This document shows, in pieces, positions 25,331 to 52,821 of a DNA stretch of 63,575 nt. The notes beneath the pieces are model-generated. The model had not been told where the DNA came from. It made no database searches and saw nothing but the letters and a program-made list of their open reading frames with translations. Position 1 is the stretch's first letter. Every line of letters begins with the position of its first letter. Made by a program: the position numbers and the translations under genes. Origin of the DNA: Selaginella moellendorffii (taxonomy: Eukaryota; Plantae; Lycopodiophyta); NCBI RefSeq assembly GCF_000143415.4, contig NW_003314276.1, positions 319,537 to 383,111 of the forward strand. The letters run 5' to 3'.

Positions 25331-28194
25331 TTATGTAAAAGTGATTTCTAATACAGACTATTGTGATTTCAATGGCCAAAATAGAGATGTTTGCCTTGCT
25401 TAGGGATGCATCTTGTTTTGGTGAATCCTACCTACCTCTCTACATAAGCTCTTGTTTTTCCTTCTAGGAAAACAAAGAGATTAGAGCAAAGCTTAAAATC
25501 AAAGCTTTCATCACCTAAACTTCATTTTGCTTGTTGCCACCTTGAATAAGCAAAGAGTGTAGATACATAATAATCCATCCTTGCCAACAACTTTTATATT
25601 CAAGCATGAAGGGAATGGGAGTGGCTTATTAACATATGTGAGATCGACAGAAGTGACTGCCAAATGATGATGACTAAGCTTTTTATAGTGGAGTGTTGCA
25701 TTTGGATCACAAGTGTTGACCACTCCTTTTTCGAGCGCTTGTTTTGTTGTGTTGAAAACAATATCATATCACCTTTATTGAAGCTATTTTTTATTCGGGT
25801 GTCTTTAAGTGTTCTTAGAAAAATGGAAATAATTGGAATATAGCTTTGTGAAATATAGAGCTTACTATTTCTATTGGTTCATCCCTCTATAACTAGTATA
25901 GTGCTAAAAATTAGTCTAACAATTAAAAGGTTTAAAAGAGATATCTTATTGCTATATTGTTTCAAAATGTCATCCCAAAGTCCTTAATGGTGGAAAGAAA
26001 ATGAGTGGTAACCAAAGGTATGGTTATGTTGTGAAAAGTCCTGGAGGTCAATGAAACTTAGTGGATGAGCTTTTTGTGTAGTGCACCCTATCTCTCTCTT
26101 CCATTAAGCTAACTAAACAAGGAGCAAGTGCTTAATAAGAGAAGTTTTAATGGCTATTTTATACCATATATACAACAAAATTTTAAGGATTTTAAGGTGA
26201 TAATATATCTAAGTCTTATCCCATAATCACATGTGTTATACTCACACTTACTCTTTCTAAAACTTCTCTTTTTCCTACTCCTCTATCTTGGTGTGCAAGT
26301 TGACACTCTACAGAAGCATGCAAATGAAACAAAGTGATGAAACAGGCTAGCTACCTTTTCCACAAACTACTCCCTAGTGACTAGCCCAACAGTCTCTTTC
26401 TTGAATACACTGTCCAGAATCTGTGGCAGCGAGTTCCAGTAATCACCTTTGAGAGCAAAAAGTAAAAGAGAGCAAAAAAAATCACCTTCAATGTCTTAGA
26501 GCCAAATTGTAAAAGTCCACCCTGCCATTTAGCTGACTTCCTCTTGAGATCTTGGATGTGTAGTATATTGGAAGGGAAAGTTTTACTTCTCATCTTGTGC
26601 ACTACTCCCACAATAAAATTTTAGCATCTAATATGTTCAATATGAATAAGAGAGAGCATGCACCTATCTAGACAATTATAATAGTGCAAGAAATGATCAC
26701 CACAATTGCTCCAAACATGAAACCCTCAAATACCAATAGCTTTAATAACTGTTTTTTAAGAGTAAGTTACATCTAAGCCATTAATTTTATGAATCTGAGG
26801 ATAAGAGAATATTTGTCCCTTGATGCTAATAGAACTTTTAAATAAAGAAGTACTAGCAAAAGTCCTAGGTATGCTGGGAGAGTCTTGTTTATTTTTTGCT
26901 GTAATTGTAATTGTAATTTATATTATAGCTCTAATATAATATAAATATTTATAAAGTTTGAAATAAACTATATTTTAATTTTTACTTAATATTACATATT
27001 ATTAGTTTAATATTTCAATTCATTAAAACATTTTCTAGTGTATTTTTCAATAGCTTAGGGTTTCATAACTCTTAAGATGAGTTGAAATTACTAAATCATT
27101 ATAAATATTTATATATAATTTACTTTCTACAACATGATATTGTGATTTTGAAAAAGAGTACAGACTTAATATTTTTATTTAAAGGTATAAATTTAATATT
27201 TTAATAGAAAATAAAATTTTAGAATGTTTTATAAATTTATAAGTTTTGAAAATAAATAATAACCAAATAGATAAAATATAAAAATGCAGTAATTTATTCA
27301 GACTGGACTAATATGTAATACTTATCTAAATTTATGCTAATATGTAAGATAATTACAATGATATTATCATATAAATTAATCTTGACACATAAATAACAAG
27401 ACATACCCAATATAGATCCTAGTGTGCTTAGGGGAAAATGTAGGTAGTGCTAATTGAAAGTATGATAAAGTTTTGCCAAGATTAAAGGGGTCTTTTGTTT
27501 AAATGTATGAGTATGATGATTATGATGTTTTGAATATATTTTCAGAGTATCCAAAAGTTGCTCAGCATAGGAAAGACATACACTCTAAAATTCTCAAGGA
27601 TGAATTCAATACGAGTGGTAGCATGAGTGAAAATTCAGAAACCTAATATTCTATAAGAAAAATAAGCTCAAGCTTTAAAAGATCATACATGTATATATGC
27701 TCATGGTGGCAGTAGCAGGGATTTTTGTTTATTCTCTCCTATTTGACCCACCATATCTGCTATGATCTATATTATAAACTAATAGTTTATGAAACAAACT
27801 TATTTTTATATACTAAAATTTGAATAATATTACTAAGTTAAATTTACAGTAACATATTTATATTTCAGTAGTAAATAATAAAATAAAAAAAAACTAAATT
27901 TATGATTAATTAATAATTCATATATTTTTATGTTAAAAATTTATTTATTCAATTTATTATTTGGTAATATTTTCCAATACTTAGTTAATTTAAAAAGTTT
28001 TATTTGTAATTATATACTTTAAAACATTTATATTATAAAAATGAGTTTTTTTATTTCTTCAGTAATTGTATTAGTAATTACTATAAGCTTGTTGACACAA
28101 CTAAAAGTAATTTATGTGATAGAATAACTATTATTATTCATCTCATCTATTTCAATTAATGGAATTAATATTTTTTATTTTAACAAATTCATTT

Positions 28195-28362
28195 TATGAG
28201 TGAATGGAATATGGAAAGGGAATACAAAAAATGTGCATAGCAATTAGCACTAAAACCCTAACAAGAGCGAGTGGTCCAGATTGAAACTAATTTGACAGCT
28301 ATCAATATCCCAGTACGCTGATATTAATATACGGCATTGTAGCCATACACTTGGCCCTCACA
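28195..28362 (-). repeat. 3' LTR (168 bp) lacking the TATA segment
   Basis: Homologous to 41776-41951 and 45526-45700 but reads CTCTTGT-TAGGG where the 45526 LTR has CTCCTGTATATAAGCTAGGG. Confidence 0.85.
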
Positions 28363-31300
28363 TCATCCCCTCCTCTTATAATAATAGAAGACCATCATGG
28401 TTCTATTGTAGACGAGCCGAGATTTGGAGGAACGTTAGGACCTCCCTAACAGGAGCGAGTGGTCCAGATTGAAACTCATTCGACGGCTATCAAAATCCTA
28501 GTACGCTGATATTAGTATATGGCATTGTAGCCATAGTCTTGGCACTCATATCATCCCCTCATCTCATAATAATAGAAGAAAACCATGGTTCTGTTGTAGA
28601 CAGGCCGGGATTTGGAGGAATGTTAGGACCACCCTAACAAGAGTGAGTCGTCCAGATTGAAACTAATTCGATGGCTATCAAAATCAAAATACGCTGATAT
28701 TAGTATACGGTATTGTAGCCATACACTTGGCCCTCACATCATCCCCTCCTCTCATAATAATAGAAGACCATTATGGTTCTGTTGTAGACGGGCCGGGATT
28801 TTGAGGAACGTCAGGAGCACCCTAACAGGAGTGAGTGGTCCAGATTGAAACTAATTTGACGGCTATCAAAATCCTAGTACGTTGATATTAGTATACAGCA
28901 TTGTAGCCATACACTTGGCCCTGACATCATCCCCTCCTCTCATAATAATAGAAGACCATCATGGTTCTGTTGTAGACGGGCCGGGATTTGGAGGAACGTC
29001 AGGACCACCCTAATAGGACTGCGTGGTCCAGATTGAAACTAATTCGACGGCTATCAAAATCCCAGTATGCTGATATTAGTATACGGCATTGTAGCCATAC
29101 ACTTGGCCCTCACATCATCCCCTCCTCTCATAATAATAGAAGACCATCATGGTTCTGTTGTAGACGGGCCAGGATTTGGAGGAATGTCAGGACTAACCTA
29201 ATAGGATTGAGTGGTCCAGATTGAAACTAATTCGACGGCTATCAAAATCCTAGTACGCTAATATTAGTATACGGCATTGTAGCCATACACTTGGCCCTCA
29301 CATCATCCCCTCCTCTCATAATAATAGAAGACCATTGTAGTTCTGTTGTAGACGGGCCGGGATTTGGAGGAACGTGAGGACCACCCTAACAGGAGTGTGT
29401 GGTCCAGATNNNNNNNNNNNNNNNNNNNNNNNNNNNNNNNNNNNNNNNNNNNNNNNNNNNNNNNNNNNNNNNNNNNNNNNNNNNNNNNNNNNNNNNNNNN
29501 NNNNNNNNNNNNNNNNNNNNNNNNNNNNNNNNNNNNNNNNNNNNNNNNNNNNNNNNNNNNNNNNNNNNNNNNNNNNNNNNNNNNNNNNNNNNNNNNNNNN
29601 NNNNNNNNNNNNNNNNNNNNNNNNNNNNNNNNNNNNNNNNNNNNNNNNNNNNNNNNNNNNNNNNNNNNNNNNNNNNNNNNNNNNNNNNNNNNNNNNNNNN
29701 NNNNNNNNNNNNNNNNNNNNNNNNNNNNNNNNNNNNNNNNNNNNNNNNNNNNNNNNNNNNNNNNNNNNNNNNNNNNNNNNNNNNNNNNNNNNNNNNNNNN
29801 NNNNNNNNNNNNNNNNNNNNNNNNNNNNNNNNNNNNNNNNNNNNNNNNNNNNNNNNNNNNNNNNNNNNNNNNNNNNNNNNNNATAATAATAGAAGACCAT
29901 TGTAGTTCTGTTGTAGACGGGCCGGGATTTGGAGGAACGTGAGGACCACCCTAACAGGAGTGAGTGGTCCAGATTGAAACTAATTCGACGGCTATCAAAA
30001 TCCAAGTACGCTAATATTAGTATACGGCATTGTAGCCATACACTTGGCCCTCACATCATCCCCTCCTCTCATAATAATAGAAGACCATTGTAGTTCTGTT
30101 GTAGATGGGCCGAGATTTGGAGGAACGTCAGGACCACCCTAACAGGAGTGAGTCGTCCAGATTGAAACTAATTTGACAGCTATCAAAATCCAAGTACGCT
30201 GATATTAGTATACGGCATTGTAGCCATACACTTGGCCCTCACATCATCCCCTCCTCTCATAATAATAGAAGACCATCATGGTTCTGTTGTAGACGGGCCG
30301 GGATTTGGAGGAACGTTAGGACCACCCTAACAGGATTGTGTGGTTCAGATTGAAACTAATTTGATGGCTATCAAAATCCTAGTATGCTGATATTAGTATA
30401 CGTCATTGTAGCCATACACTTGGCCCTCACATCATCCCCTCCTCTCATAATAATAGAAGACCATCGTGGTTCTATTGTAGACGGGCCGAGATTTGGAGGA
30501 ACGTCAGGACCACTCTAACAGGAGTGTGTGGTTCAAATTGAAACTAATTTGATGGCTATCAAAATCCTAGTACGATGATATTAGTATACGGCATTGTAGC
30601 CATACACTTGGCCCTCACATCATCCCCTCCTCTCATAATAATAGAAGACCATCATGGTTCTGTTGTAGACGGGCCGGTATTTGGAGGAATGTCAGGACCA
30701 CTCTAACAGGATTGTGTGGTTCAGATTGAAACTAATTTGACGGCTATCAAAATCCTAGTACGCTGATATTAGTATACAGCATTGTAGCCATACACTTGGC
30801 CCTGACATCATCCCCTCCTCTCATAATAATAGAAGACCATCATGGTTCTGTTGTAGACGGGCCGGGATTTGGAGGAACGTCAGGACCACCGTAACAGGAG
30901 TGAGTCGTCCAGATTGAAACTAATTTGATGGCTATCAAAATCCTAGTATGATGATATTAGTATACGGCATTGTAGCCATACACTTGGCCCTCACATCATC
31001 CCCTCCTCTCATAATAATAGAAGACCATCATGGTTCTGTTGTAGACGGGCCGGGATTTGGAGGAACGTCAGGACCACCCTAACAGGAGTGTGTGGTTCAA
31101 ATTGAAACTAATTTGATGGCTATCAAAATCCTAGTACGATGATATTAGTATACGGCATTGTAGCCATACACTTGGCCCTCACATTATCCCCTCCTCTCAT
31201 AATAATAGAAGACCATCATGGTTCTGTTGTAGACGGGCCGGGATTTGGAGGAACGTCAGGACCACCGTAACAGGAGTGAGTCGTCCAGATTGAAACTAAT

Positions 31301-34300
31301 TTGATGGCTATCAAAATCCTAGTACGCTGATATTAGTATACGGCATTGTAGCCATACACTTGGCCCTCACATCATCCCCTCCTCTCATAATAATAAAAGA
31401 CCATCATGGTTCTGTTGTNNNNNNNNNNNNNNNNNNNNNNNNNNNNNNNNNNNNNNNNNNNNNNNNNNNNNNNNNNNNNNNNNNNNNNNNNNNNNNNNNN
31501 NNNNNNNNNNNNNNNNNNGATATTAGTATACGGCATTGTAGCCATACACTTGGCCCTCACATCATCCCCTCCTCTCATAATAATAGAAGACCATCATGGT
31601 TCTGTTGTAGACGGGCCGGTATTTGGAGGAATGTCAGGACCACTCTAACAGGATTGTGTGGTTCAGATTGAAACTAATTTGACGGCTATCAAAATCCTAG
31701 TACGATGATATTAGTATACGGCATTGTAGCCATACACTTGGCCCTGACATCATCCCCTCCTCTCATAATAATAGAAGACCATCATGGTTCTATTGTAGAT
31801 GGGCCGAGATTTGGAGGAACGTCAGGACCACCCTAACAGGAGTGAGTCGTCCAGATTGAAACTAATTCGACGGCTATCAAAATCCAAGTACGCTGATATT
31901 AGTATACGGCATTGTAGCCATACACTTGGCCCTCACATCATCCCCTCCTCTCATAATAATAGAAGACCATCATGGTTCTGTTGTAGACGGGCCGGGATTT
32001 GGAGGAACGTTAGGACCACCCTAACAGGATTGTGTCGTTCAGATTGAAACTAATTTGATGGCTATCAAAATCCTAGTATGCTGATATTAGTATACGGCAT
32101 TGTAGCCATACACTTGGCCCTCACATCATCCCCTCCTCTCATAATAATAGAAGACCATCGTGGTTTTGTTGTAGACGGGCCGGGATTTGGAGGAACGTTA
32201 GGACCACCCTAACAGGATTGTGTGGTTCAGATTGAAACTAATTTGACGGCTATCAAAATCCTAGTACGCTGATATTAGTATACAGCATTGTAACCATACA
32301 CTTGTCCCTTACATCATCCCCTCCTCTCATAATAATAGAAGACCATCATGGTTCTGTTGTAGACGGGCCGGGATTTGGAGGAACGTCAGGACCACCGTAA
32401 CAGGAGTGAGTCGTCCAAATTGAAACTAATTTGATGGCTATCAAAATCCTAGTATGATGATATTAGTATACGGCATTGTAGCCATACACTTGGCCCTCAC
32501 ATCATCCCCTCCTCTCATAATAATAAAAGACCATCATGGTTCTGTTGTAGACGGGCCGGGATTTGGAGGAACGTCAGGACCACCCTAACAGGAGTGTGTG
32601 GTTCAAATTGAAACTAATTTGATGGCTATCAAAATCCTAGTACGATGATATTAGTATACGGCATTGTAGCCATACACTTGGCCCTCACATTATCCCCTCC
32701 TCTCATAATAATAAAAGACCATCATGGTTCTGTTGTAGACGGGCCGGGATTTGGAGGAACGTCAGGACCACTCTAACAGGATTGTGTGGTTCAGATTGAA
32801 ACTAATTTGACGGCTATCAAAATCCTAGTACGATGATATTAGTATACAGCATTGTAGCCATACACTTGGCCCTGACATCATCCCCTCCTCTCATAATAAT
32901 AGAAGACCATCATGGTTCTATTGTAGATGGGCCGAGATTTGGAGGAACGTCAGGACCACCCTAACAGGAGTGAGTGGTCCAGATTGAAACTAATTCGACG
33001 GCTATCAAAATCCAAGTACGCTGATATTAGTATACGGCATTGTAGCCATACACTTGGCCCTCACATCATCCCCTCCTCTCATAATAATAGAAGACCATCA
33101 TGGTTCTGTTGTAGACGGGCCGGGATTTGGAGGAACGTTAGGACCACCCTAACAGGATTGTGTGGTTCAGATTGAAACTAATTTGATGGCTATCAAAATC
33201 CTAGTATGCTGATATTAGTATACGGCATTGTAGCCATACACTTGGCCCTCACATCATCCCCTCCTCTCATAATAATAGAAGACCATCATGGTTCTGTTGT
33301 AGACGGGCCGGGATTTGGAGGAACGTTAGGACCACCCTAACAGGATTGTGTGGTTCAGATTGAAACTAATTTGATGGCTATCAAAATCCTAGTATGCTGA
33401 TATTAGTATACGGCATTGTAGCCATACACTTGGCCCTCACATCATCCCCTCCTCTCATAATAATAGAAGACCATCATGGTTCTATTGTAGACGGGCCGAG
33501 ATTTGGAGGAACGTCAGGACCACTCTAACAGGAGTGAGTCGTCCAGATTGAAACTAATTCGACGGCTATCAAAATCCAAGTACGCTGATATTAGTATACG
33601 GCATTGTAGCCATACACTTGGCCCTCACATCATCCCCTCCTCTCATAATAATAGAAGACCATCATGGTTCTGTTGTAGACGGGCCGAGATTTGGAGGAAC
33701 GTCAGGACCACCCTAACAGGAGTGAGTCGTCCAGATTGAAACTAATTCGACGGCTATCAAAATCCAAGTACGCTGATATTAGTATACGGCATTGTAGCCA
33801 TACACTTGGCCCTCACATCATCCCCTCCTCTCATAATAATAGAAGACCATCATGGTTCTGTTGTAGACGGGCCGGGATTTGGAGGAACGTTAGGACCACC
33901 CTAACAGGATTGTGTCGTTCAGATTGAAACTAATTTGATGGCTATCAAAATCCTAGTATGCTGATATTAGTATACGGCATTGTAGCCATACACTTGGCCC
34001 TCACATCATCCCCTCCTCTCATAATAATAGAAGACCATCGTGGTTTTGTTGTAGACGGGCCGGGATTTGGAGGAACGTTAGGACCACCCTAACAGGATTG
34101 TGTGGTTCAGATTGAAACTAATTTGACGGCTATCAAAATCCTAGTACGCTGATATTAGTATACAGCATTGTAACCATACACTTGTCCCTTACATCATCCC
34201 CTCCTCTCATAATAATAGAAGACCATCATGGTTCTGTTGTAGACGGGCCGGGATTTGGAGGAACGTCAGGACCACCGTAACAGGAGTGAGTCGTCCAAAT

Positions 34301-36528
34301 TGAAACTAATTTGACGGCTATCAAAATCCTAGTATGATGATATTAGTATACGGCATTGTAGCCATACACTTGGCCCTCACATCATCCCCTCCTCTCATAA
34401 TAATAAAAGACCATCATGGTTCTGTTGTAGACGGGCCGGGATTTGGAGGAACGTCAGGACCACCCTAACAGGAGTGTGTGGTTCAAATTGAAACTAATTT
34501 GATGGCTATCAAAATCCTAGTACGATGATATTAGTATACGGCATTGTAGCCATACACTTGGCCCTCACATTATCCCCTCCTCTCATAATAATAAAAGACC
34601 ATCATGGTTCTGTTGTAGACGGGCCGGGATTTGGAGGAACGTCAGGACCACCCTAACAGGAGTGTGTGGTTCAAATTGAAACTAATTTGATGGCTATCAA
34701 AATCCTAGTACGATGATATTAGTATACGGCATTGTAGCCATACACTTGGCCCTCACATTATCCCCTCCTCTCATAATAATAGAAGACCATCATGGTTCTG
34801 TTGTAGACGGGCCGGGATTTGGAGGAACGTCAGGACCACCCTAACAGGAGTGAGTTGTGCAGATTGAAACTAATTCGACAGCTATCAAAATCCTAATACG
34901 CTGATATTAGTATATGGCATTGTAGCCATACACTTGGCCCTGACATCATCCCCTCCTCTCATAATAATAGAAGACCATCATGGTTCTATTGTAGATGGGC
35001 CGAGATTTGGAGGAACGTCAGGACCACCCTAACAGGAGTGAGTCGTCCAGATTGAAACTAATTCGACGGCTATCAAAATCCAAGTACGCTGATATTAGTA
35101 TACGGCATTGTAGCCATACACTTGGCCCTCACATCATCCCCTCCTCTCATAATAATAGAAGACCATCATGGTTCTGTTGTAGACGGGCCAGGATTTGGAG
35201 GAACGTTAGGACCACCCTAACAGGATTGTGTGGTTCAGATTGTAACTAATTTGATGGCTATCAAAATCCTAGTATGCTGATATTAGTATACGGCATTGTA
35301 GCCATACACTTGGCCCTCACATCATCCCCTCCTCTCATAATAATAGAAGACCATCGTGGTTCTATTGTAGACGGGCCGAGATTTGGAGGAACATCAGGAC
35401 CACCCTAACAGGAGTGAGTCGTCCAGATTGAAACTAATTCGACGGCTATCAAAATCCAAGTACGCTGATATTAGTATACGGCATTGTAGCCATACACTTG
35501 GCCCTCACATCATCCCCTCCTCTCATAATAATAGAAGACAATCATGATTCTGTTGTAGACAGGCCGGGATTTGGAGGAATGTTAGGACCACCTTAACAGG
35601 AGCGAGTGGTCCAGATTGAAACTAATTTGACGGCTATCAAAATCCCAATACGCTGATATTAGTATACGGCATTGTAGCCATACACTTGGCCCTCACATCA
35701 TCCCCTCCTCTCATAATAATAGAAGACCATCATGGTTCTGTTGTAGACGGGCCGGTATTTGGAGGAATGTCAGGACCACTCTAACAGGATTGTGTGGTTC
35801 AGATTGAAACTAATTTGACGGCTATCAAAATCCTAGTACGATGATATTAGTATACAGCATTGTAGCCATACACTTGGCCCTGACATCATCCCCTCCTCTC
35901 ATAATAATAGAAGACCATCATGGTTCTATTGTAGATGGGCCGAGATTTGGAGGAACGTCAGGACCACCCTAACAGGAGTGAGTCGTCCAGATTGAAACTA
36001 ATTCGACGGCTATCAAAATCCAAGTACGCTGATATTAGTATACGGCATTGTAGCCATACACTTGGCCCTCACATCATCCCCTCCTCTCATAATAATAGAA
36101 GACCATCATGGTTCTGTTGTAGACGGGCCGGGATTTGGAGGAACGTTAGGACCACCCTAACAGGATTGTGTCGTTCAGATTGAAACTAATTTGATGGCTA
36201 TCAAAATCCTAGTATGCTGATATTAGTATACGGCATTGTAGCCATACACTTGGCCCTCACATCATCCCCTCCTCTCATAATAATAGAAGACCATCGTGGT
36301 TTTGTTGTAGACGGGCCGGGATTTGGAGGAACGTTAGGACCACCCTAACAGGATTGTGTGGTTCAGATTGAAACTAATTTGACGGCTATCAAAATCCTAG
36401 TACGATGATATTATTATACGGCATTGTAGCCATACACATGGCCCTCACATCATCCCCTCCTCTCATAATAATAGAAGACCATCATGGTTCTATTGTAGAC
36501 GGGCCGGGATTTGGAGGAATGTCAAGAC
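28257..36528 (-). repeat. Tandem array of about 44 or more 188-bp units (3' internal tip + PPT + 5' part of U3)
   Basis: Period of 188 is seen directly. The unit reverse complement reads ...GAGAGGAGGGGATGA|TGTGAGGGCCAAGTGT..., matching the LTR start at 45526. Two N-gaps lie inside the array. Confidence 0.97.
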
Positions 36529-38424
36529 CATGTGTTTGAATGTCCGAATGAGCCATTCGACCAGATCGTTTGATTGTTGATGATAAGCACTTGTGAATGT
36601 GTGGTGTATCCCCAATTGAGACGTCAAAACATGAAGTGCCTCAACTATAAATATGGGACCATTATCTGAAAGAATCCACTCTGGACAAGAATGCTAGAAT
36701 ACCACTCGAATGAGGAGGAAGTATCCAACAACAATTGTAGAAGCGCTAGCAAGAGCACCAACTTCCACCCAACGAGTTAAGTAGTCAGAAGCAATAATAA
36801 CATACTCATTGCCAGTAGTCGACTGTGGAAAAGGTCCTATAAGATATAATGCCACCAACTCAAATGGACAGGAAATTGCAATTGACTCCAACCGTCCTTC
36901 CGCAGCACGAGGGGGAGTATTATAAGCTTGGTACCAAACGCAGCTATGCACATACCGGATAATATTGTGTCGCATCTCTGGCCAAGAAAAAGACTTGCGC
37001 AGCTTCTCGATTACACGATGATGTCCCATATGCCCACCTAGAGCAGGAGAATCATGGTAGGCATGGAGAAACTGTGGAATAAAGACAGAAGGCACCACCA
37101 ACGTTAAATGATCATCAGGATTTGTCCCCACAAAATAAAGAAGGCCGTCTTCAAGGCGATATTGAGAATGTCAATGCCGGAAAGGTAAGTCATCAGCAAG
37201 TGATGCAGAATCCTCAAACCCCTCTCAAAGCCTTCAAATCCACGGCTCAATCTTTTGAGCCTCATAAACCTCATCAAGAGAAGGTAGATCTTGCTTTGCG
37301 TCTTGTGGACATTGAACATCAAGTACAGCAACCGCTGACGGCATAGAATCCTCATCTAGAAAATCTACAGATGCTAGAACAACAGGTTCGTCAGAAACAT
37401 GAGAAGAGAGTGGAGAAGGAAGAAGAGCTCGAGAAAGGGCATCAACATCAGGTCTAAAACTCCCTAGGTGATGAACAACATCAAAATCATATATCTTAAG
37501 CTTTAAAGTCCACCGAGCAGTATGACCAACCAGGTCCTTCCGCTTCAATAATGAAATAACGGTAGCATGGTCACCTTCAAGTAACGTTTGAGAACCACGT
37601 AAATATACATGAAGTTTTTCGAAACCCCAGACTGCTGCTAAACACTCCTTCTCTATCGTGGAATAGTTCATCTTCGTTGGCTATAACGTATGGCTTATAT
37701 ACGCAATGGAATGGCATTGACCAAGCACACTTGAGCTTTCTTGCATCAACACTCCTCCAACACCAATGTTAGAAGCATCCACGCACAAAATAAAAGGTTG
37801 AGTGTAGTCAGGATATGCCAAAACCGGAGTAGTCATCAATAGCTCTTTGAGATCCACGAATGCCCACTCACAATCTAGAGACTAGATGAAAGATGACACT
37901 GATGACTTCAACAACGCTCGCAATGATGCAGTGCAATCCGAAAGATGATTCACAAAGTGACCGAGATATTGCACCTTGCCCAAGAAGCACTGCACATCAT
38001 TTAGACATTTCGGAGTAGGGAACTTTAGAACAGCCATAAGTTTGTTGAGATCAACTTGCAAACCTTCACGAGAAATATAGTACCCAAGATAAGTTGTGTT
38101 CTTGGACCCAAACACACACTTCAACCGCTTCAGCTTTAAACCAACGTCCCGTCTCGTAGCCGATCCAACACTTTACGAACATCACGAACATGCTCCTCCC
38201 ACGTCCCCTCTGAGTGGATCAAAACATCATCAATGAAGTTAGCAGTTAGCTCCGGCATATCACAAAGAACCTCGTCCATCATCCACTAGACAGTTTCTGG
38301 AGCATTGTTCAAACCAAATGGCATCACCAAGAATTTGTACAATCCAAGTGGCATACAAAAAGTAGTCTTAGGAATATCTTCTTCGGCCATTGGTACTTGC
38401 TAGTACCTAGAAGCAAGATCTAGC

Positions 38425-39019
38425 TGTAAGCAACCAAAGAGAACAACTTGAGAGGCGGTCCATAAGGTTCAAATATAGAGGGAAAAAGGCCCATGAATAA
38501 GAGTGCACCCCCTTTTCCAATCTGTTAAGGGTCTTTGGATATTTGGGGTTAGGTGTCCTTGGGTTTAAATAGTACTGAGATGGGTTACATCCTGGGAAGT
38601 CCAAATTCATGAGCTTACATTTGGTATTTGAGTGGTCTCAAGTTCGACTTTGTTAGTTGGCTAGGGGAATCACACCACATGATGATTGACATTTGGCTGG
38701 TTTAGTTTGCTCCCGCTGGGCTCGACCCGAGGGGTAGGGTGTCAAGAGAGCTGGGCTCTCGGGAGAGCTGTGGCTCTCAGCTTTCGTTCACGAGGGCATG
38801 AACTTGTAGGGAAGCATGGTGGATTGTAAGCAACCAAAGAGAACGACTTGAGAGACGGTCCATGAGGTTCAAATATAGAGGGAAAAGGGCCCATGAATAA
38901 GAGTGCACCCCTTTTTCCAATCAGTTAAGAGTCTTGGGATATTTGAGGTTAAACGTCCTTGGGTTTAAATAGTACTGGGCTGGGTGACCTCCTGGGAAGT
39001 CCAAATTCAGAAGCTTACA
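38425..39019 (+). mobile_element. Full-length Cassandra TRIM (595 bp)
   Basis: LTRs at 38425-38619 and 38825-39019, PBS-like TGGTATTTGAG, perfect TSD CTAGC. Inserted in the RT region. Confidence 0.93.
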
Positions 39020-39041
39020 CTAGCTTGGTAAACCAACGACT

Positions 39042-39645
39042 TGTAAGCTCTTGAATTTGGACTTCCCGGGAGGCCACCTAAGGAAGTGCTCAAGAACAGC
39101 TCCCACTCCCGAAAGGGAAACCAACTGCGGTGCTCCTGGCTCTTGTGGAGTGGTGCCCCACTTGAGTACCTTGTGGCTCATTGGTCCTCGCCCTTCCTAG
39201 GGGCTTGGGCCTTCCCTTCGGGATAGAAGTGGGAGGGTAGAGGTACCCATACCGAGCTGTTAGGCCACAGTGTTTTGCCCTGGTGTCCCGAAGCAAGTGT
39301 TGCACCCAAGGTTTAGAGGGTCCCATGATCAAGTCTTGTTATACCAAGGGGTGTTAGGAACCTGGAGGCTTGGTGTGCTTGGCTGCTTGTGCCTGCGGGG
39401 AGTGTAGTCGAACCTTAAGTCCAGTCTAACCCGAGGAGGGGGATTGGGAGAGATTTGGGAATCCGTATATGGATGGCTAACGCTCCATTGCTTGTGCAGT
39501 GAGTAGCTGAAACCATGTAAGACTAAGTAGTAACTGGTACAATAGGCAGGAACCTTGGCGAGGGAACTTAGCAAAACCCAAGGCAGTGTTGGTTGGATAG
39601 ACGAGGTAAGCTGGCAAATTGGAAATGAAATATTTGTGGCTTACA
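39042..39645 (-). mobile_element. 604-bp solo LTR-like insertion whose 3' terminus matches Cassandra
   Basis: TGTAAGC...GCTTACA termini and perfect TSD CGACT. 39042-39078 is the reverse complement of the Cassandra LTR end. Confidence 0.85.
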
Positions 39646-41775
39646 CGACTTCACCCTAGATGATCCAAGAGCCCTAGACAATCCAAGAGATCAGCAGTGT
39701 GAAGAAGAGGGTACACATTCAGGATCGTCACTTCATTTAATAGACGATAGTTGATGCAGAAATGAATACTCCCATTAGGCTTCGTCACAAGATGAGGTTC
39801 ACATGCACAAGGACTCTGCAACTTTTGAATAATACCCTTCTCCAACATCTCCTTAACGTTTACACGTAAAATCTTGATCTCTTTGGATGACTGACAACGA
39901 ATAGGAACCTTGATTGGACGAGCATTCCCGGTTAGAATCGGATGACATGTGGCAATCTTGGCCCTAGATGATAGGTCAAAGTCAAAGAGATCAAAATACT
40001 CCTTCATGAGCTGGTTAACCTCTGCAACACAAAGATTGTCGGAGGGATCGGAAAAGGGAAGATCAGAACATGATAGAAACATAGGAGGTAATAGTGGGAG
40101 ACAAAAGTAATGGAAGCAAAGGTAGAAGTAGAGGGACTAAAACATACAGAAGTGAGAGGAATGAATGAAACATAAGGAAATATGAGACAAAGGGGAGAAG
40201 CCTCAAAATCACACTTGGCATGATTGCGCTGCAACTAATCCATACCAAGGATGAGGTCAAAAGCTTGACTCGGCACCACCCACAAGGACTGCAACTCAAG
40301 CGCGAGATCGCCCATATGCACAACCAGGTCCACCTAATCCCGTGCATATGCATGTGTACGGTTGTTGCCATATAGAATGAAAACTAGTTCTGCCGCATGA
40401 CGCAAATGTAAACGGTAACGTGTAGCAACAGGTTGAGCAATAGAAGATAAACTCGAACCTGTATCAACTAACACGGAGAGAATAATAGAAGACTTCTTGT
40501 TATAAAAATGAACTTAGAAAGTAAATACTGGATGAACCGGTGCCAAGTGAACCCCTTGATGATACTCCTAAAAGAAAGATGGAGGGGTCACTGACTTATT
40601 CGCGCAAGGTCCCTCCATTACTCACACGACTCCTTGTTTCTCTGATGCATCGTGGTGTCTAGACCTTCTATTGCAGCAGCACCAATACGACATTGTTGAT
40701 GCCAAGGTCTTAACCTAGGAAATGGAGGTCACCAATCTAGAAAATGCTGATAATGCCGATAAGTGTGCCCAACTTCATCACATGCCCAACAGCAAATGTC
40801 ACGGCCAGGACCATGTCCTTGCCTTTGTCCTTAAACTTGAGCAGCAGCAGCATCAACCTCCATTGGAACGGGACCATCGCGTACAAAAAGAGGAGCAGAA
40901 GGATAGGCAGCAAATAGTGGAAGAGGCAACGTCTCATAATGTTGTGCCAAGTGAAGAGCATCGTCAAGGGTGGCTAGAGCAAGTGCATGCACAAGTCCGA
41001 CAAGATCTTGACGAAGTGCTAGCCAAACATTCTTAGCTTGATCTGCTCTAATATATTTGGCTTCAAACGAAGCAAAAGACTTCGGAAACAAACACCAAAT
41101 TTCATCACCAACTCAGATGGCCTTTGGCAAAGACGATGCAATTGTTGGAACGCATCATCACAATCATCAGCATGTCCGAATGTGCGTTTAAAGACGTTCG
41201 GGAGAACACTCCAATCCCCACGAGTGGCTGCACTCAAACCATTGTACCATTGCAACGCTATCCTTTGGAGACACATCGTAAACTGACGCAAACGTTGAGC
41301 ATCATCCCAAGAATGATATGTGGCAATCACTGTGAAGTGATCGAACATATGGTACACATCATCCCCAAGATTCCGGCAAAAAAACGCTGGTTGAACGCGA
41401 GGATTGGCACTAAGAGCAGGAGGAGTTGTACCACATGCCATGAATGCCACCATCAACTGAGTTTGGTTGTTCAATTGCAAACACATAACATTAAACAATT
41501 GTACCAATTGCTACTCCAGAGTCAAAGGAGGAGATTGCTACCATAAAGATGAACGAAAAGAAAAGAATGAAAGAAGAAGAATGACAAAAGCTAAAAGGAA
41601 ATGGAGACCTAGACAATGCAAAAAGTTATATCTAAACCAAAATCCTAAAGGGAAAGAATAAAAGAAAGAAAATGGAAAAAGTTAGATCTAGATGATGCAA
41701 AAGTTAGATCTCAACCAAAATCCCAAATCCAAGCACTCCTTAGGGACAATCAAAGGTGCCCTTTATCTCCACTAA

Positions 41776-41951
41776 TGTGAGTGCATGGAATATGAAAAGG
41801 GAATATAGAAAATATGCATATCAATTAGCCCAAAAACCCTAATTTATATATAAGAGTGAGTGGTCTAAATTGAAACCAATCCGACAGCTATCAAAATCCT
41901 ACTATGCTAATATTAGTATACAGCATCGTAGCTGTACACTTGGCCCTCACA
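41776..41951 (-). repeat. 5' LTR (176 bp) of the minus-strand gypsy
   Basis: TG...CA termini, followed on the minus strand by TAGTGGAGATAAAGGG (decayed PBS). Confidence 0.9.
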
Positions 41952-43079
41952 ATTTTAATTTTACTCTAAATTAAGTATTTTATACCTTTATACTATATTT
42001 TATATTTTTTAAAATTTCTTACTGAAATTTCATATCTCAAATTGCTTTATTTCAAATTCATCTTTAAAACATACAGAATTTGAGTTTTTCAATATTCCAT
42101 CTGATTTAGTTATGTTTATATAAATATTTTTCTCAGCTGTACTTTTATTAAAACTTTTATTCTTATTTAATTTTATAAATTTAAATTATCACAAACTTAT
42201 TTTATATACATATATTTATTCACTACATACAATTATCTAGATTTGTTAGCATGTAATTATAAGATATATATAGACATAAAATTTAAACTGGTAAATTTTA
42301 TTAGAACACTGGTATATTGGAAACTGAGTTTTGATGTGTCATGAGTCCATCATAATGAATTAATGATGTTTATCTAAGATCATAATTATCATTAATAATA
42401 AATATTTTAGTTGTGTTATTCTATAACAAATATATATTTCACAGGCACATATATTTTGCAAAAGGAGATATCTCAGAAGATGAAACTAGGAGATTATAAT
42501 TATAAGATAATATTTTGTATATAATTTTAATGGTCACAGAATTCCACTATAGTATATTTATATAATAAGTATAAATAGTATAATTATGGGTAATCTATAG
42601 TTTACCTATTATTGCTAAAATATTCACTTTTAGCAGTATACTTTCCATTACTCACACATCTTACTGATGGTCTAAAAGAAAAGTATTTTGTATTTAAATA
42701 ATTTAAGATGTTTTAGATATTTCAAATATATATTAAGGTAAAATAAATGAAACCTTTATGATAAGACTAACATCAGTTGTTGTAGTGCTTTAAATTTATA
42801 TATTTTTTATAATATTTAAGGAAATATCAGAAGATAAATGTGGAAGTTTCATGTGTATTTCAATTGTCAGCTTTTCATTTTTATTGTTTCTTTATATTAA
42901 GAATAAATATTTAAGAATGAGATTTCATAGGTGGCAAAGTTCTTGATTGTAGGAAGAAGTTCCTACAATTGAACTTCTTAGATTTGTAGGAAGCAGAATC
43001 GAAGACACTTCTTCGATTCTTCTGTATAGAAGAATTGATATTATTGTGGTATTATGATTTTTAAATATATATTCTATAA

Positions 43080-44159
43080 TTACATTAACCTCAAAAGACA
43101 TGTACTTTGGTGTTCATTGGATCACGAATAAAAGGCACATTGAGATTGTAAACATCTATCACTTTGGCTTCACTTCCATCATCTTGGATCATTGACAGAA
43201 CTTTACAATCTGTAGAGACAGACCAGATATTCCTCTAGCTGCTTGCTGTGTGGAACATTAACTTGTAGTTATATACATGAGTACAATCCATGAGTTGTTG
43301 TCACGATCATGCCTCAACAATCTATACATGATGGGCTTATAGATTTGGTTGGAGTGTACAAAGCAGTGTGGCCCACACAATGCAATTATATGCATCTCTT
43401 TCAGGAAAGATCTTGTGCTAATAAAACAAGTGATGATTTGGAAAACCGACCACCAGCTATCATAATCATCTCATGGTCATTGATGATGAGCACAAGGTGA
43501 AGACTTAGAGGATCCCATCAATCATCCACCGGAGTGTACATCTCAGCTATTGGATACATCCCCACATAAATGTCACCCACTACGTAGAGTCAGCCATCCA
43601 TAACCACAGAGGCACACAACGTTCAAGGACACAGTATTAATGCTAAGGAACTCCATTGATTCATGTATAGTTTGAAGATGCTTAATGTTGTCATATAATC
43701 CCATCCACTAATAAGATAGTCAACTATAATATTATACACTCTATTAAAATTGTAGTTGAGTGGGCGTATGGTCATGCTGTGAAGAGCTTGACACACAAAT
43801 CCTCCCGTGTTCTGATGTGGAATAATGATCCACTCTTTCTTGGTACTTTTGGGATTGAATGCCATGATCAAGACCTCTTTCCCATCATTAAGAAACACTG
43901 TTGCCATGAGTATGTCTTCATTCAACCCTTGCATAGAACAATCATCGTAGAACTTGGCACTAGAGACAAGATTCCTCCATGCACTACTCACTTTACACAT
44001 CTGCCCATGGGCTGATAGTGGCACTCGCAAGAGGCACTGATATGCGGCATCATCATCTAATCTGGGAATCAGTGTTGTTGTTGCCATGGTTGAGGGACCT
44101 ATTTGTCTTAGGCAGATCTTGTTTGTCCCATCACCATTCCCGCCCATTGCACACTTCAT
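43080..44159 (-). pseudogene. F-box/kelch-repeat protein pseudogene
   Basis: F-box LIPRLDDDAAYQCLLRVP...VSSAWRNLV. Kelch repeat P*TLCASVVMDG*LYVVG...AEMYTPVDD*WDPL contains three in-frame TGA stops. 3' end approximate. Confidence 0.88.
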
Positions 44160-45525
44160 AGATGATGCCCCATTAACCTCAAAGGAAAGCCACACTTGAT
44201 CTTTGCTCTAGCTTTCTTGGTGTTGATTTGCTCCTGACTATGACAACCTTCCTCTTGCTCTTGCAATTCCTAGCACCACCTACCTCTATTCATTGTATCT
44301 CTCACATTCTTCATGATGCCCATACCCAAGAATCAGTACCCGTGCTATTTGCTGCATACTTGATGGATTGCACCCCAACACCAAGAAAAACCTCATACCT
44401 GGTGGATGCCCTCTGCTCCTTGGCACTGACTTTCTTCTCTTAGCTATGGCATAAACCCTACTCACACAATCTGTCCCTTCTCAAGCAGGTTTTTATAAGG
44501 AATTTATACCGCACATTTTTTTTTTGTGAAAATGAACTCCAGAACATGGTCTTACTGCTGGAACGTTCAAATAGACAGGGTGAAAACCTTGCCCCCATTG
44601 ATAATTCCCATACAAAACAATCCAGGCTCTTGCATGGGCACCAAGTAATATGCCCACATGAATCTAAACCACAAGAGAATGGATAAGGGCACTTCTACTT
44701 TTTTATTGAAGCTTGTATAACTGTAGTGATGTACGAGGTGAATAAACATTTGTTGTGTTTGTTTGATTGTGAAGAAACATTGTTTTCTTGACATATAAAT
44801 AGAATGATAACTGATTTGTTTTATATATATTCATCATCTGGTTGTATACTGTTTCTAAATTTCACACCTGTTTACTTAATTCACTTGTATTTCATTCATA
44901 TTTGACGTATAACATCATGACATTATATTAACTAACTAGTCATTGTACGTTACAAAACTCATCTCCCTTTTTCACAAAGTTAGCTTTTGGGAAAAAAGTG
45001 TTTTTTTTTTTTGAGTCATAGTATTGTTTACATGATTGCAATGTGCTTACTCTTTTTCTTCTTACCCACTTAGATTTTTACATGGAAATATGGTTAGGGA
45101 TATGATGATTGTCAAGTTCAAGATGCCAACATGTTGTGTTTCCAGGGTAGTGAGCTGATTAGCTTTTTTGGAGCTTAATAGTGATGAGGGCCTGATAGAG
45201 ATTCAAGATGTAATGCAACCACAATGTTGTATATGAAGGAAGGGTGTCAGTGCCAACTTGCCAAGGAGAAAAAAGGTGATATATGCTCATATCCAAGTTA
45301 TTAGGGTGACACCATCTAGCCAGCAATATTGCAAGCTAGCATTAGATAATAAGAGTGATGCACATTTATTTCTTGATGATCATATAGGTAGAATAGGAAA
45401 TCTATTTATATTCCACACTTTGACAATGCATGCATGGGCTTTTGGTTACACAAATACTACTATAAATTATAATTTAAGATTTTTATAACTTATTCTATAT
45501 TATTTTAATATCATAAAAATCATGA

Positions 45526-45700
45526 TGTGAGGGCCAAGTGTACGGTTACAATGCCATATACTAATGTTAGCGTAGTGGGATTTTGGTAGCCGTCGGATTA
45601 GTTTCAATCTGGACCACTCGCTCCTGTATATAAGCTAGGGTTTTTGGGCTAATTAATATGCATATTTCTGTATTCCCTTTCCATATTCCAAGCACTCACA
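45526..45700 (+). repeat. 5' LTR (175 bp) with TATATAA box
   Basis: TGTGAG...CTCACA 6-bp terminal inverted repeat. Confidence 0.92.
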
Positions 45701-45701
45701 T

Positions 45702-45712
45702 TGGTGGAGTTG
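45702..45712 (+). promoter_or_regulatory. Primer binding site, tRNA-Ala type
   Basis: TGGTGGAGTTG here and TAGTGGAGATA in the other copy give a consensus TGGTGGAGATG, complementary to the tRNA-Ala 3' end (CAUCUCCACCA). Confidence 0.7.
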
Positions 45713-45933
45713 AAGGGCACCTTTGATTGTCCTTGAGGAGTGCTTGGATTTGGGATTTTGATTTAGATCTAGCTTTTGCATTGTCTAGATCTAGCTTTTT
45801 CCATTTCCTTCTTTTTGTTCTTTCCTTTCAGGATTTTGGCTTAGATCTAGCTTTTTGCATTGTCTAGATCTACCATTTCCTTCTAGCTTTTTGTCATTTC
45901 TCTTCTTTTGCTCTTTCTTTTTCATTTGTCTCC

Positions 45934-46866
45934 ATGGCAGATCAACAATCTCCTCTTTTGACTCTCGAGCAGTAGTTGGTCCAATTGCTTGATGCTATGC
46001 GCTTGCAATTGAACAACCAAACTCAATTGATGGCGGCATTCACGGCACGTGGTCCACCTCCTCCTGCTCTTGGTGCCAATCCTTGCGTTCGGCCGGAGTT
46101 CTTTCGTGGGAATCCTGGGGATGATGTGTACCATTGGTTTGATCACTTCATGGTGATTGCCACATATCATTCTTGGGATGATGCTCGACGGTTGCGTGAG
46201 TTTCCCATGTGTCTTCAAAGGACGGCATTGCAGTGGTACAATGGTTTGAGTGCAGCCATTCGTGGGGATTGGAGTGTTCTCCCAGACGTCTTCAAACGCA
46301 CCTTTGGACATGCCGATGATTGTGATGATGCTTTCCAACAATTGCATTGTCTTCGCCAAGGGCCATCTGAGTCGGTGATGCAATTTGGCATTCATTTCCG
46401 AAGTCTTTTGCTTCGTGCGGAGCCAAATATGTCGGAGCGGATCAAGCTAGGAATGTTGTGGCCAGCACTTCGTCAAGATCTTGTCGGACTTGTGCATGCA
46501 CTTGCTCTTGCCACCCTTGACGATGCTCTTCACTTGGCACAACGTTATGAGACGTCGCCTCTTCCACTTCTCGCTGCACGTCCTTCCACTCCACTTCCTA
46601 TGTGTGATGGTCCTGTTCCAATGGAGGTTGATGCTGCTGCTGCTCGAGTCCAAGGACAAGCGCGAGGACGTGGTCGTGGCCGTGATGTTCGCTGTTGGGC
46701 GTGTGATGAAGTTGGTCATACTTATCGGCGTTGCCATCGTTTTTCGGATTGGCGACCTCCATTTCCTGGGTGGAGACCTTGGCGTCAGCAACGTCCCGTG
46801 GGTGCTGCTGCAGTGGAAGGTCTAGACACCGAGATGAATCTGGGAAACGAGGAGTCATGCGAGTAA
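45934..46866 (+). pseudogene. gag: Gag with CCHC zinc knuckle and one premature TAG
   Basis: ATG at 45934, TAG at 45973 (likely from CAG). Motifs ALQWY, GPVPMEVD and CWACDEVGHTYRRC. Confidence 0.92.
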
Positions 46867-46905
46867 TGGAGGGACCTTGCGCGAATAAGTTAGTGACCCC
46901 TCCAT
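46842..46905 (+). promoter_or_regulatory. -1 programmed ribosomal frameshift signal (G GGA AAC plus H-type pseudoknot)
   Basis: The heptamer is in the correct gag phase, followed by a 7-nt spacer. Stem 1 pairs 46856-46863 with 46876-46883 and stem 2 pairs ATGGAGGG with CCCTCCAT. The -1 frame leads into the protease. Confidence 0.8.
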
Positions 46906-49900: not shown

Positions 49901-50060
49901 ATACTAGATCATGGGATCAATATTTGACAAGCATTCTTCCACTTGTCCGAGCAGAGTCTACCGAACACTTAGGCCGCGTACAAGTGGGACAACAACGGCA
50001 CTACAACTCCCATCATCGTCCACCTGCGGAGTACAAAGTGGATGATTTTGTGTTAGTTGT
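46848..50060 (+). pseudogene. pol: Pol: aspartic protease, RT, RNase H, integrase, with a few stops and frameshifts
   Basis: LVDTGSS; [28 protein letters not shown]; VDASDIGLGGVL, NYSTTENECLA; HHCC finger and D-D-E (FDLMGP, SDNGPAF, GLVER). Confidence 0.95.
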
Positions 50061-50300
50061 GCAATCACTAGTGGGGGAGTCATGGATGCCAATAATCCCT
50101 CCAAAGTAGATTGTGTTGTTATTAAGAGAGGGCTTGTGATTCATAAACTCCAAGAACTCTTAGATAAAAACACCAGCCTTCACAAAGTCCACAAAGAGTT
50201 GGAGCTGTTGATGAAATTATAGGTAATCAAACTTTAAAAGGTTACAAAATATTTTTCTTTGTTTAACATAGCAATTACATAAAGAGAAACACAAGTAAGA

Positions 50301-52240: not shown

Positions 52241-52821
52241 GTTTCTGAAGATCTTGCAGATCTCTTATGGGAGATTATTATAAGGATTGTAAAGTCTCAT
52301 GGATTTTCAAATGCTTTGACATCTTGTGCATCAAAAGATATTTACCTATAGTGTAAATGCAGCACATGTGGGTTTTACCCTTTATCCTATGGTGATTTAC
52401 CATAGAATAACTACAAAGCGGAACCTAAACCCTCCATGTACCATGTCATATGCCATGTGTCACATGCCACGTGTCTAAAGGACAGTGGTGTGGGACCCAA
52501 GTTTTAGGGCCTTGGGCCATTGAATGAAGAAACTGTGCTAAACTCCTAAGCATGGAGCCAAGGAATGATGGAACCGGACCACAGAGCAACTCCTGAGCAT
52601 ACAGCCCAAGGAGCGAAGGGATAGGAGCACGAAATGACTTGGATCAATCCTAGAGCAACCAGCATCCCAATGCCAGGACCAACATGCAAAACAGAGCCAG
52701 ATAGGGTCTGGTGCTATTTCAGCATACTGGTGGTCTAACACGAGGATATGGGTACTCCACCAGTTAGCAATTAGCATAGTGTGGAGCTTGGGCTTAGACC
52801 CAAGCCAAACGTAGAACAAGG

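Follow-up and report, generated by a model that had tools for sequence, protein, structure and literature searches.

How did a tandem repeat come to lie inside the very retrotransposon from which its unit was taken? The question is raised by a stretch of Selaginella moellendorffii DNA of 63,575 nucleotides (contig NW_003314276.1, positions 319,537 to 383,111; hereafter the window), for which a preliminary description had reported a long run of 188-bp units and had offered reverse-transcription template switching, rolling-circle amplification and unequal crossing-over as possible sources. The evidence favours an origin in place. To the account as a whole, in which a segment was duplicated at the DNA level after integration and then multiplied by unequal exchange, leaving the array as a by-product, we assign a probability of roughly 0.7.

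TRF detected a 188-bp period at 28255-29409 (6.1 copies, 90% matches, 0% indels) and again at 29883-36530 (35.4 copies, 91% matches, 0% indels). A 30-nt LTR-start probe yielded 38 minus-strand matches in the array against 0 expected from shuffles, while a looser anchor located 41 PPT/LTR-start junctions that are read in the array, spaced at exactly 188 bp throughout, N runs excepted. The TRF period, the read junctions and the constant spacing bear out the array of about 44 x 188 bp claimed earlier, a figure that comprises the 41 read junctions and approximately 3 units inferred from the estimated length of a gap.

Each unit runs, on the minus strand, from LTR nt 1-108 (starting TGTGAG) through a 65-nt 3′ internal tip to a closing 15-nt PPT block, GAGAGGAGGGGATGA; the PPT itself, GAGAGGAGGGGA, is followed by TGA, placing the tract 3 nt ahead of the LTR start. 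The parent contributes 108 of 176 LTR nucleotides and 80 internal nucleotides to the unit, in agreement with the earlier reading of the repeat as a reiterated segment of 3′ tip, PPT and U3 start. Adjacent units meet at …TTAGGGT/GGTCCTGACG…, a non-homologous junction whose two sides overlap by at most 1 nt (T). As expected of a tandem repeat derived from a transposable element (TE), many near-identical units lie head to tail, the monomer is homologous to a defined part of the TE (unit nt 1-108 match three family LTRs at 86-94%), and the tip and PPT continue straight from the element's internal region. The low variability of the PPT (1% versus 3-5%) was discounted as a sign of selection, the counts representing inherited variants rather than independent events. 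No RNA family or tRNA was detected in the window by Rfam and tRNA scans.

The element enclosing the array (Table 1) is, by its sequence features, a decayed Ty3/gypsy LTR retrotransposon. The domain order between its LTRs is gag-PR-RT-RH-INT, as in Ty3/gypsy, and the Pfam families RT_RNaseH and Integrase_H2C2 are matched on minus-strand ORFs, corresponding in the parent to RNase H and the integrase zinc finger. The LTRs have the terminal inverted repeat TGTGAG...CTCACA, PBS-like sequences (TTGGTGGAG and TTAGTGGAG) follow the 5′ LTRs, and the PPT precedes the 3′ LTR. A second element of the same family, with its 5′ LTR at 45526-45700, is colinear with the parent's internal region at 86-89%; it stops short in the C-terminal region of the integrase and hence has no 3′ end, and the integrase C-terminus (chromodomain site) is missing from both copies. 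The extra DNA that interrupts this colinearity in the parent includes a 195-nt direct repeat (D3).

Table 1. Features of the parent element, its array and its surroundings (positions within the window).
Feature	Position	Strand	Remarks
AT-rich flank at 3′ LTR end	26801-28194		GC about 18%
Complete terminal 3′ LTR, 168 bp	28195-28362	minus	TGTGAG...CTCATA; 8-bp TATA box, present in both 5′ LTRs, deleted
Tandem array of 188-bp units	28363-36530	minus	head-to-tail, zero indels; array length 8.2 kb
Assembly gap 1, 473 N	29410-29882		inside array; about 3 hidden units if the length estimate is correct
Assembly gap 2, 100 N	31419-31518		inside one unit of the array
749-bp block	31520-32268	minus	recurs at 35656-36404, 1 mismatch, lag 22 units
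971-bp block (about 5 units)	31801-32771	minus	recurs at 33681-34651, 1 mismatch, lag 10 units
Decayed internal region of parent	36531-41775	minus	gag, protease, RT, RNase H, integrase zinc finger and start of core
Extra DNA within parent, about 1.25 kb	38425-39672		missing from sister element; colinearity break between I6 and I4
Parent 5′ LTR, 176 bp	41776-41951	minus	TATATAAA intact; PBS-like TTAGTGGAG next
AT-rich flank at 5′ LTR	41952-42446		GC about 19%, like the 3′ LTR-side flank
Second element of same family	45526-50109	plus	head-to-head with first; gag, PR, RT, RH, INT; Pfam matches in order

Base composition reveals how the parent entered this locus. GC of 19% or less occurs in only 0.6% of 495-bp windows across the 63.5 kb, all of them at about 26801-28296 or 41951-42446. 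Because both ends of the parent adjoin these stretches, the only ones of their kind in the window, flank composition demonstrates, at the sequence level, one insertion on the minus strand, running from 41951 down to 28195. A candidate target-site duplication (AAAAT on the 5′ side, AAATG on the 3′ side) was rejected as proof of a single insertion on account of its ambiguity, the flank composition being the stronger evidence. LTR similarity alone does not prove partnership: identity between the parent's two LTRs is 83.8%, and the array consensus resembles its own 5′ LTR (86%) no more closely than that of the sister element (90%).

The array is continuous with the parent on both sides. The integrase breaks off at about 36535, where it is fused directly to the 65-nt tip; the first unit follows unbroken from this remnant, and the last unit passes unbroken through the complete LTR to the flank. 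The array matches the register of the parental sequence perfectly at either end, with approximately 43 surplus units preceding the original PPT/LTR junction. The integrase-side end (36530/36535) and the terminal LTR (28195-28362) are each read within contigs, which upholds the earlier placement of the array inside its own parent, between a truncated integrase and the full 3′ LTR.

Evidence on the time of origin comes from derived characters of the LTR. The 8-bp TATA-box deletion is common to every unit and the terminal 3′ LTR, as are 4-5 substitutions (one transversion); these shared changes are absent from the parent's own 5′ LTR and from the sister's 5′ LTR. The two LTRs of an element are identical at integration; the shared changes, and the duplication that copied them, would therefore post-date it. 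The first duplication thus most likely took place at the DNA level after integration. In a small outside sequencing run, the only one containing part of the window and available as short contigs only, most family contigs show an ordinary single-copy 3′ end; contigs of other family members have the same tip-PPT-LTR order and carry TATATATAAGC at the site of the deletion, with the TATA box intact.

The anatomy, the single insertion, the shared derived characters and the block structure are shown by the sequence, and from them we infer both an order of events and a molecular mechanism. A single insertion placed an old, already immobile copy of Ty3/gypsy type in very AT-rich DNA; after integration its 3′ LTR would have shed the 8-bp TATA box. 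A DNA-level, non-homologous event may then have duplicated the 188 bp that begin 65 nt ahead of the PPT and end at LTR nt 108, template switching in replication and illegitimate recombination being the candidate mechanisms. On the tip side this duplication breaks at the same place, to within 0-3 nt, as the deletion of the integrase C-terminus, so that the two may stem from one complex rearrangement. Once two units were present, out-of-register recombination or slippage could have raised their number to the present estimate of about 44 copies, recent multi-unit duplications included.

The internal structure of the array matches such growth. Monomer types repeat in the set order E-B-A-F-C-D, and nested block duplications differ in age, with divergence from 0.1% to about 5%. 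Similarity reaches 94.6% among core units and 90.6% among the five LTR-adjacent units. Recurring, near-identical blocks and diverged edge units fit the pattern expected of unequal exchange, in which the edges are poorly homogenized, and speak against both reverse-transcription switching and rolling circles.

Among the three mechanisms put forward in the preliminary description, unequal exchange is thus the one favoured, with a DNA-level duplication preceding it, whereas template switching and rolling-circle amplification are both disfavoured. Reverse transcription would have built the array through repeated minus-strand template switches from the tip to U3 nt 108, one of them into integrase, and the element would have integrated with a pre-made array that later only drifted and was reshuffled. 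Repeated jumps from one donor site fit the tip-side breakpoint (0-3 nt) shared by the integrase-deletion and unit junctions, and this mechanism was proposed for Tat/Ogre 3′UTR repeats (Macas 2009, as cited in PMC7004042). We nevertheless consider it unlikely, because the units share with the 3′ LTR a post-integration TATA-box deletion that the 5′ LTR lacks: the 5′ LTR would have been copied from the same U3, yet it keeps the TATA box and the 4-5 bases changed in the units and 3′ LTR. For conversion to have carried the deletion into the terminal LTR, the exchange would have had to fall in the 6 nt that separate the deletion from the end of the unit, and 43 consecutive jumps in a single round are implausible, so that growth at the DNA level is required in any case. 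An extrachromosomal circle of 188 bp or several units, amplified by rolling circle and reinserted at the parental site by homologous recombination, would account for the perfectly constant monomer length and zero indels in the read units, and rolling-circle amplification is a recognized proposal for satellite growth (PMC7004042). A single burst should produce star-like units, however, whereas the observed ordered monomer types, recurring and nested multi-unit blocks, divergence gradient toward the edges and in-register ends make this origin highly improbable. A transposing, TATA-less family variant that already carried the repeats retains a small residual probability as the source. Post-integration duplication followed by unequal exchange remains the preferred reading.

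It is very unlikely that assembly error accounts for most of the array's length or for its placement, whether because the true number of units is much lower or much higher or because different loci were scaffolded together. The array does contain two N gaps, the LTR-side contig is joined to the integrase-side contigs by scaffolding only, and the sole outside run has only short contigs; because near-identical blocks of 750-970 bp exceed a typical Sanger read, the copy number may err in either direction. Against an artefact stand the individual variant patterns of the 41 read units, the end junctions lying within contigs, and the rare composition of about 18% GC common to both outer flanks. Both gaps are flanked on each side by array units of the same orientation, and register is preserved across them to 1-2 nt: anchor spacing is 753 over gap 1 (4 x 188 = 752) and 190 over gap 2 (188). 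One outside-run contig also extends 12 nt past the unit junction specific to the array, at 3 mismatches in 107. A broader proposal, that the locus belongs to, and perhaps preserves the birthplace of, a 188-bp satellite present at many spikemoss loci, possibly centromeric or heterochromatic and with a chromatin or small-RNA role, appears improbable. The monomer size is typical of satellites, and TE-derived arrays have become centromere-associated elsewhere (CRM1TR, PMC3648361; Ogre-derived FabTRs, PMC7004042). The depth of the array-junction contig (10.8) is of the same order as that of ordinary family LTR contigs in the outside run, but is equally explained by the 44 or so local copies. No second array locus was found elsewhere in the window or in a 21.6-kb stretch of another scaffold, both weak tests. 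Satellite DNA in the strict sense forms long, genome-wide abundant arrays at one or more heterochromatic loci; the array described here is 8.2 kb long. The units have no TATA box, and Selaginella moellendorffii is reported to have no prominent 24-nt siRNA class and no CHH methylation (PMC5569507), which counts against the proposal; the readings as a nascent centromeric satellite and as an siRNA source, both put forward in the preliminary description, thus find no support here, and no function is indicated for the array. If the birthplace reading were true, founder element, founding junction and expanded satellite could be studied together in one small genome.

In protein searches the RNase H-integrase ORF retrieved only relatives of at most 38% identity, mostly arthropod Ty3 elements, and the gag ORF retrieved none. 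An exact-pattern scan for the PPT/LTR junction gave the expected 0 matches in a metagenome collection, which is not plant DNA. GL377724.1, considered as an allelic scaffold on the basis of a neighbouring F-box ORF, proved to be a paralogue (87.6% over 510 nt) with no LTR or unit.

TE-derived arrays of this sort are already well documented (Ogre 3′UTR arrays, CRM1TR/CRM4TR, RPCS), and the present array leaves knowledge of satellite origin unchanged. Its value lies in an unusually legible birth of a tandem repeat, in which 14 kb preserve the parent, the two array ends, the junction that founded the array and, in the TATA-box deletion, a datable marker. These features permit an argument for a post-integration, DNA-level origin that is rarely possible, and the locus extends the phenomenon to a short lycophyte element.

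The closest structural parallel is provided by CRM1TR and CRM4TR of maize, whose proposed history is one of illegitimate recombination and subsequent local growth by recombination, with variants specific to each locus (Sharma et al. 2013, PMC3648361). The parent in that class is a centromeric (CR) chromovirus. In those repeats, as here, the unit derives wholly from one Ty3/gypsy parent, combining part of the LTR with an adjacent non-coding internal segment across a non-homologous junction. The composition is a mirror image, however: CRM1TR/CRM4TR units join the LTR to the downstream 5′ UTR, whereas the present unit joins the 3′ internal tip and PPT to the start of the 3′ LTR. Their monomers measure 0.7-1.4 kb in pericentromeric arrays of more than 100 kb, compared with 188 bp and 8.2 kb here, and their arrays have no surrounding parent, whereas this array still lies inside its parent copy.

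The hypervariable 3′UTR repeats of Tat/Ogre/Retand elements (Macas 2009; Vondrak 2020, PMC7004042; PMC11963269) likewise occupy the interval from pol to the 3′ LTR in Ty3/gypsy elements. Satellites are documented to arise from them, short arrays occurring within elements and expanded ones elsewhere (PMC7004042; PMC11963269). Tat/Ogre repeats are confined to a long 3′ UTR that precedes the PPT, whereas the present unit holds the PPT and LTR nt 1-108, which sets it outside that class. They also occur on many transposing copies, whereas the evidence here points to a post-integration event in one copy. The parent is short and, unlike Tat/Ogre, almost devoid of a 3′ UTR, so that the unit had to take in the PPT and the U3 start.

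A similar combination characterizes the RPCS satellite of Ctenomys rodents, whose monomer matches a retroviral U3 region and includes a polypurine tract (as summarized in PMC3648361 and PMC9659126). As presented there, RPCS is an animal, retrovirus-derived repeat with a 348-bp monomer, forming a major genome-wide satellite with no parent provirus around the array. In tandem LTR-element arrays that share whole LTRs, such as those of Cassandra (PMC7215508), LTR-derived and internal segments also alternate head-to-tail through recombination. Each such unit, however, comprises an entire LTR together with an entire internal domain and is produced by homologous LTR-LTR exchange, whereas the array described here combines a partial LTR (108 of 176 nt) with a non-homologous junction.

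The 188-bp array belongs to a minus-strand Ty3/gypsy element (the parent), and its presence, unit make-up and coordinates agree with the preliminary description. Tandem Repeats Finder resolved a 188-bp period at 28255-29409 (6.1 copies) and 29883-36530 (35.4 copies), both tracts having no indels and 90-91% matches. A 30-nt LTR-start probe matched 38 times within the array (minus strand) and once at 45526 (plus strand), while shuffled sequence gave no matches; a looser anchor identified 41 junctions, spaced exactly 188 bp apart except in the two intervals spanning N runs. The polypurine tract (PPT) block (nt 174-188 of each unit) varies least, differing from the consensus by about 1% per site compared with 3-5% in the rest of the unit; this low variability is no evidence of constraint, because the counts are of inherited variants. 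In the LTRs at 41776-41951, 45526-45700 and 28195-28362, TTAGGGTTTT directly follows the TATA-box position, and its opposite strand includes AAACCCTAA, which we take to be the plant telo-box motif. The unit junction interrupts this telo-box-like site.

Both assembly gaps are flanked on each side by array units in the same orientation. Anchor spacing is 753 across gap 1 (473 N) versus 752 expected for four units, and 190 versus 188 across gap 2 (100 N, within one unit), so unit register is held within 1-2 nt over both gaps, an unlikely outcome if the N lengths were arbitrary. These lengths are estimates, and the count of 44 units combines 41 read junctions with about three inferred. Only scaffolding links the contig on the LTR side (up to 29409) to those on the integrase side.

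Features of the array, its parent element and the surrounding window
Feature	Position	Strand	Remarks
Array unit, part 1	LTR nt 1-108	minus	TGTGAGGGCC... to ...GTTAGGGT
Array unit, part 2	65-nt tip (3' internal end of the element)	minus	starts GGTCCTGACG
Array unit, part 3	after 65-nt tip	minus	GAGAGGAGGGGA + TGA
Complete 3' LTR of parent	28362 down to 28195	minus	168 bp; continuous with last array unit, then flank
Foreign DNA in parent	38425-39672		about 1.25 kb; absent from sister copy
5' LTR of parent	41951 down to 41776	minus	176 bp; TGTGAG...CTCACA
PBS-like TTAGTGGAG	directly after parent 5' LTR	minus
F-box ORF	43623-44195	minus	190 aa; between the two elements
Sister copy (same family)	45526-50109	plus	head-to-head with parent, about 3.5 kb apart, 86-89% identical
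Direct repeats	52821-53697 and 58908-59787		98% identical; about 6.09 kb apart
12-bp minisatellite (GTCCGAGATGGA)	5359-6019 and 12316-12580	opposite orientations

The parent internal region is colinear with the sister copy at 86-89% identity; it carries many stop codons and ORF fragments for RNase H and the integrase zinc finger (Pfam). Homology to the sister integrase ends at 36535, where the 65-nt tip is joined directly, and the integrase C-terminus, with anything between it and the tip, is deleted. Within the foreign DNA, a 195-nt sequence is directly repeated (38425-38619 and 38825-39019, 91%).

Identity between the two parent LTRs is 83.8%; of 173 sites, 28 carry substitutions (21 of them transitions), giving a calculated Kimura two-parameter divergence of about 0.19 per site. 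LTR similarity does not prove that they are partners, because the array consensus is nearer the sister's 5' LTR (90%) than the parent's own (86%). The target-site duplication candidates, AAAAT versus AAATG, match ambiguously. Base composition is decisive. Across the 63.5-kb window, only 0.6% of 495-bp windows have GC ≤19%, and all of them fall in the parent's two outer flanks, at 26801-28296 and 41951-42446. The 5' LTR, internal region, array and 3' LTR thus interrupt one very AT-rich stretch and are taken as one old insertion; the shared flanks also support the scaffolding across the array.

The timing of the founding duplication can be read from changes in the LTRs. An 8-bp deletion removing the TATA box is common to all units and the terminal 3' LTR, as are four or five substitutions, one a transversion; the 5' LTRs of parent and sister lack all of these and read TATATAAA at the deleted site, where other family members in outside-run contigs read TATATATAAGC. 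As both LTRs of a retrotransposon are identical at integration, these changes arose in the resident 3' LTR, which supports the origin in situ proposed earlier. That the array later converted the terminal LTR is unlikely, because the complete terminal LTR has the deletion as well, although only 6 nt separate the deletion from the unit end. In the simplest order of events, the resident 3' LTR would have lost its TATA box after integration and a 188-bp segment would then have been duplicated, which dates the founding duplication to after integration and makes it a DNA-level event. This dating argues against template switching during reverse transcription, one of three mechanisms in the preliminary description, as the source of the repeats. 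The sequences meeting at the unit junction (...TTAGGGT/GGTCCTGACG...) have at most 1 nt in common, which makes the founding event non-homologous. Its tip-side breakpoint coincides within 0-3 nt with that of the integrase deletion (...ACACATGGTC... at 36535 versus ...GGGTGGTC... between units; ordinary members in outside-run contigs read ...CCTCCTCC...). Given this coincidence, the integrase deletion and the first duplication may both stem from a single complex rearrangement (break repair or replicative template switching), a suggestion drawn from very few bases.

How the array grew shows in its units. Unit types recur in fixed succession, the plus-strand order E-B-A-F-C-D being seen repeatedly, and long blocks are duplicated with one mismatch each (971 bp, 31801-32771 at 33681-34651; 749 bp, 31520-32268 at 35656-36404). 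Core units have a mean similarity of 94.6%, and the five LTR-adjacent units are 90.6% alike among themselves and 92.3% similar to the core. A single rolling-circle product, also proposed earlier, is expected to be star-like, whereas the ordered types, nested duplications of different ages and diverged edges indicate no uniform burst. Such a pattern, with duplications nested at differing ages and edges left poorly homogenised, is the expected outcome of unequal exchange between sister chromatids or of slippage between units out of register; the third proposal, unequal crossing-over, is therefore favoured for the expansion. We put the probability that a non-homologous DNA-level duplication was followed by unequal exchange at about 0.7. 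Unit differences from consensus are mostly C-to-T and G-to-A, a bias that would fit silent, probably methylated DNA.

Outside data came from one small contig-only run containing part of the window, compared over 27300-29409, whose contigs give no copy number and, in that interval, do not cover the single-copy flank. In these contigs, ordinary family members show an LTR with a TATA box, the LTR end leading into the PBS, and the LTR start, PPT and tip followed from the unit boundary on by unrelated upstream sequence. A 113-nt contig spans the array-specific junction by 12 nt (3 mismatches/107), so the junction is present in reads outside the assembly, or in its source data. A metagenome pattern scan for the PPT/LTR junction, in a collection that is not plant DNA, gave no matches, and no array copy occurs in a stretch of another scaffold (GL377724.1) reached via a paralogous F-box gene. 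The suggested roles as centromeric satellite or siRNA source are unsupported, and the latter loses weight because S. moellendorffii reportedly has neither a prominent 24-nt small-RNA peak nor CHH methylation (PMC5569507).

Birth of tandem repeats from LTR retrotransposons is already well documented. Ogre/Tat/Retand elements carry short arrays in their 3' UTR, from which satellites have expanded (PMC7004042; PMC11963269); the present array is not of this type, since its unit takes in PPT and LTR. Nor does it belong with shared-LTR tandem element arrays, as only 108 of 176 LTR nt fall within each unit. Maize CRM1TR and CRM4TR, whose monomers join part of the LTR to the adjoining 5' UTR and whose authors proposed illegitimate recombination followed by local growth (PMC3648361), show similar workings, mirrored here to the 3' side. 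The rodent RPCS satellite, as cited in that paper, contains U3 and a polypurine tract, and further cases, among them a soybean minisatellite located between 3' UTR and LTR, are tabulated in a review (PMC9659126). The present array is notable mainly because founder element and array are preserved together.

No close relatives of the parent's family emerged from protein searches, and the sister gag ORF (45976-46866, plus strand) had no matches; judged from these sequences, the family seems lineage-specific. The element is short and its coding sequence extends nearly to the PPT, which recalls the Selaginella-specific lineage "Selgy" (Neumann et al. 2019, PMC6317226), to which the family possibly belongs, although this is only a lead. 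Among 5.8 billion protein clusters, the RNase H-integrase ORF (48460-50109, plus strand) had no relative above 38% identity, its best matches being spider and tick Ty3 elements.

The sister copy retains the order gag, aspartic protease, RT, RNase H, integrase zinc finger and integrase core (Pfam); it stops abruptly at about 50110, within the C-terminal region of the integrase, and no 3' LTR of it was seen within the window. The F-box ORF, which may be a gene fragment or pseudogene, has only two database relatives, both S. moellendorffii F-box/kelch proteins; the gene of one, on GL377724.1, was rejected as the same locus and is a paralogue (87.6% identity over 510 nt). The direct repeats resemble the two LTRs of an LTR retrotransposon that would be much younger; inverted fragments related to them occur at 57.7-59.1 kb and 62.1-63.5 kb. 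The GTCCGAGATGGA minisatellite probably belongs to some other repeated element, and a related piece occurs at 51348-51455.
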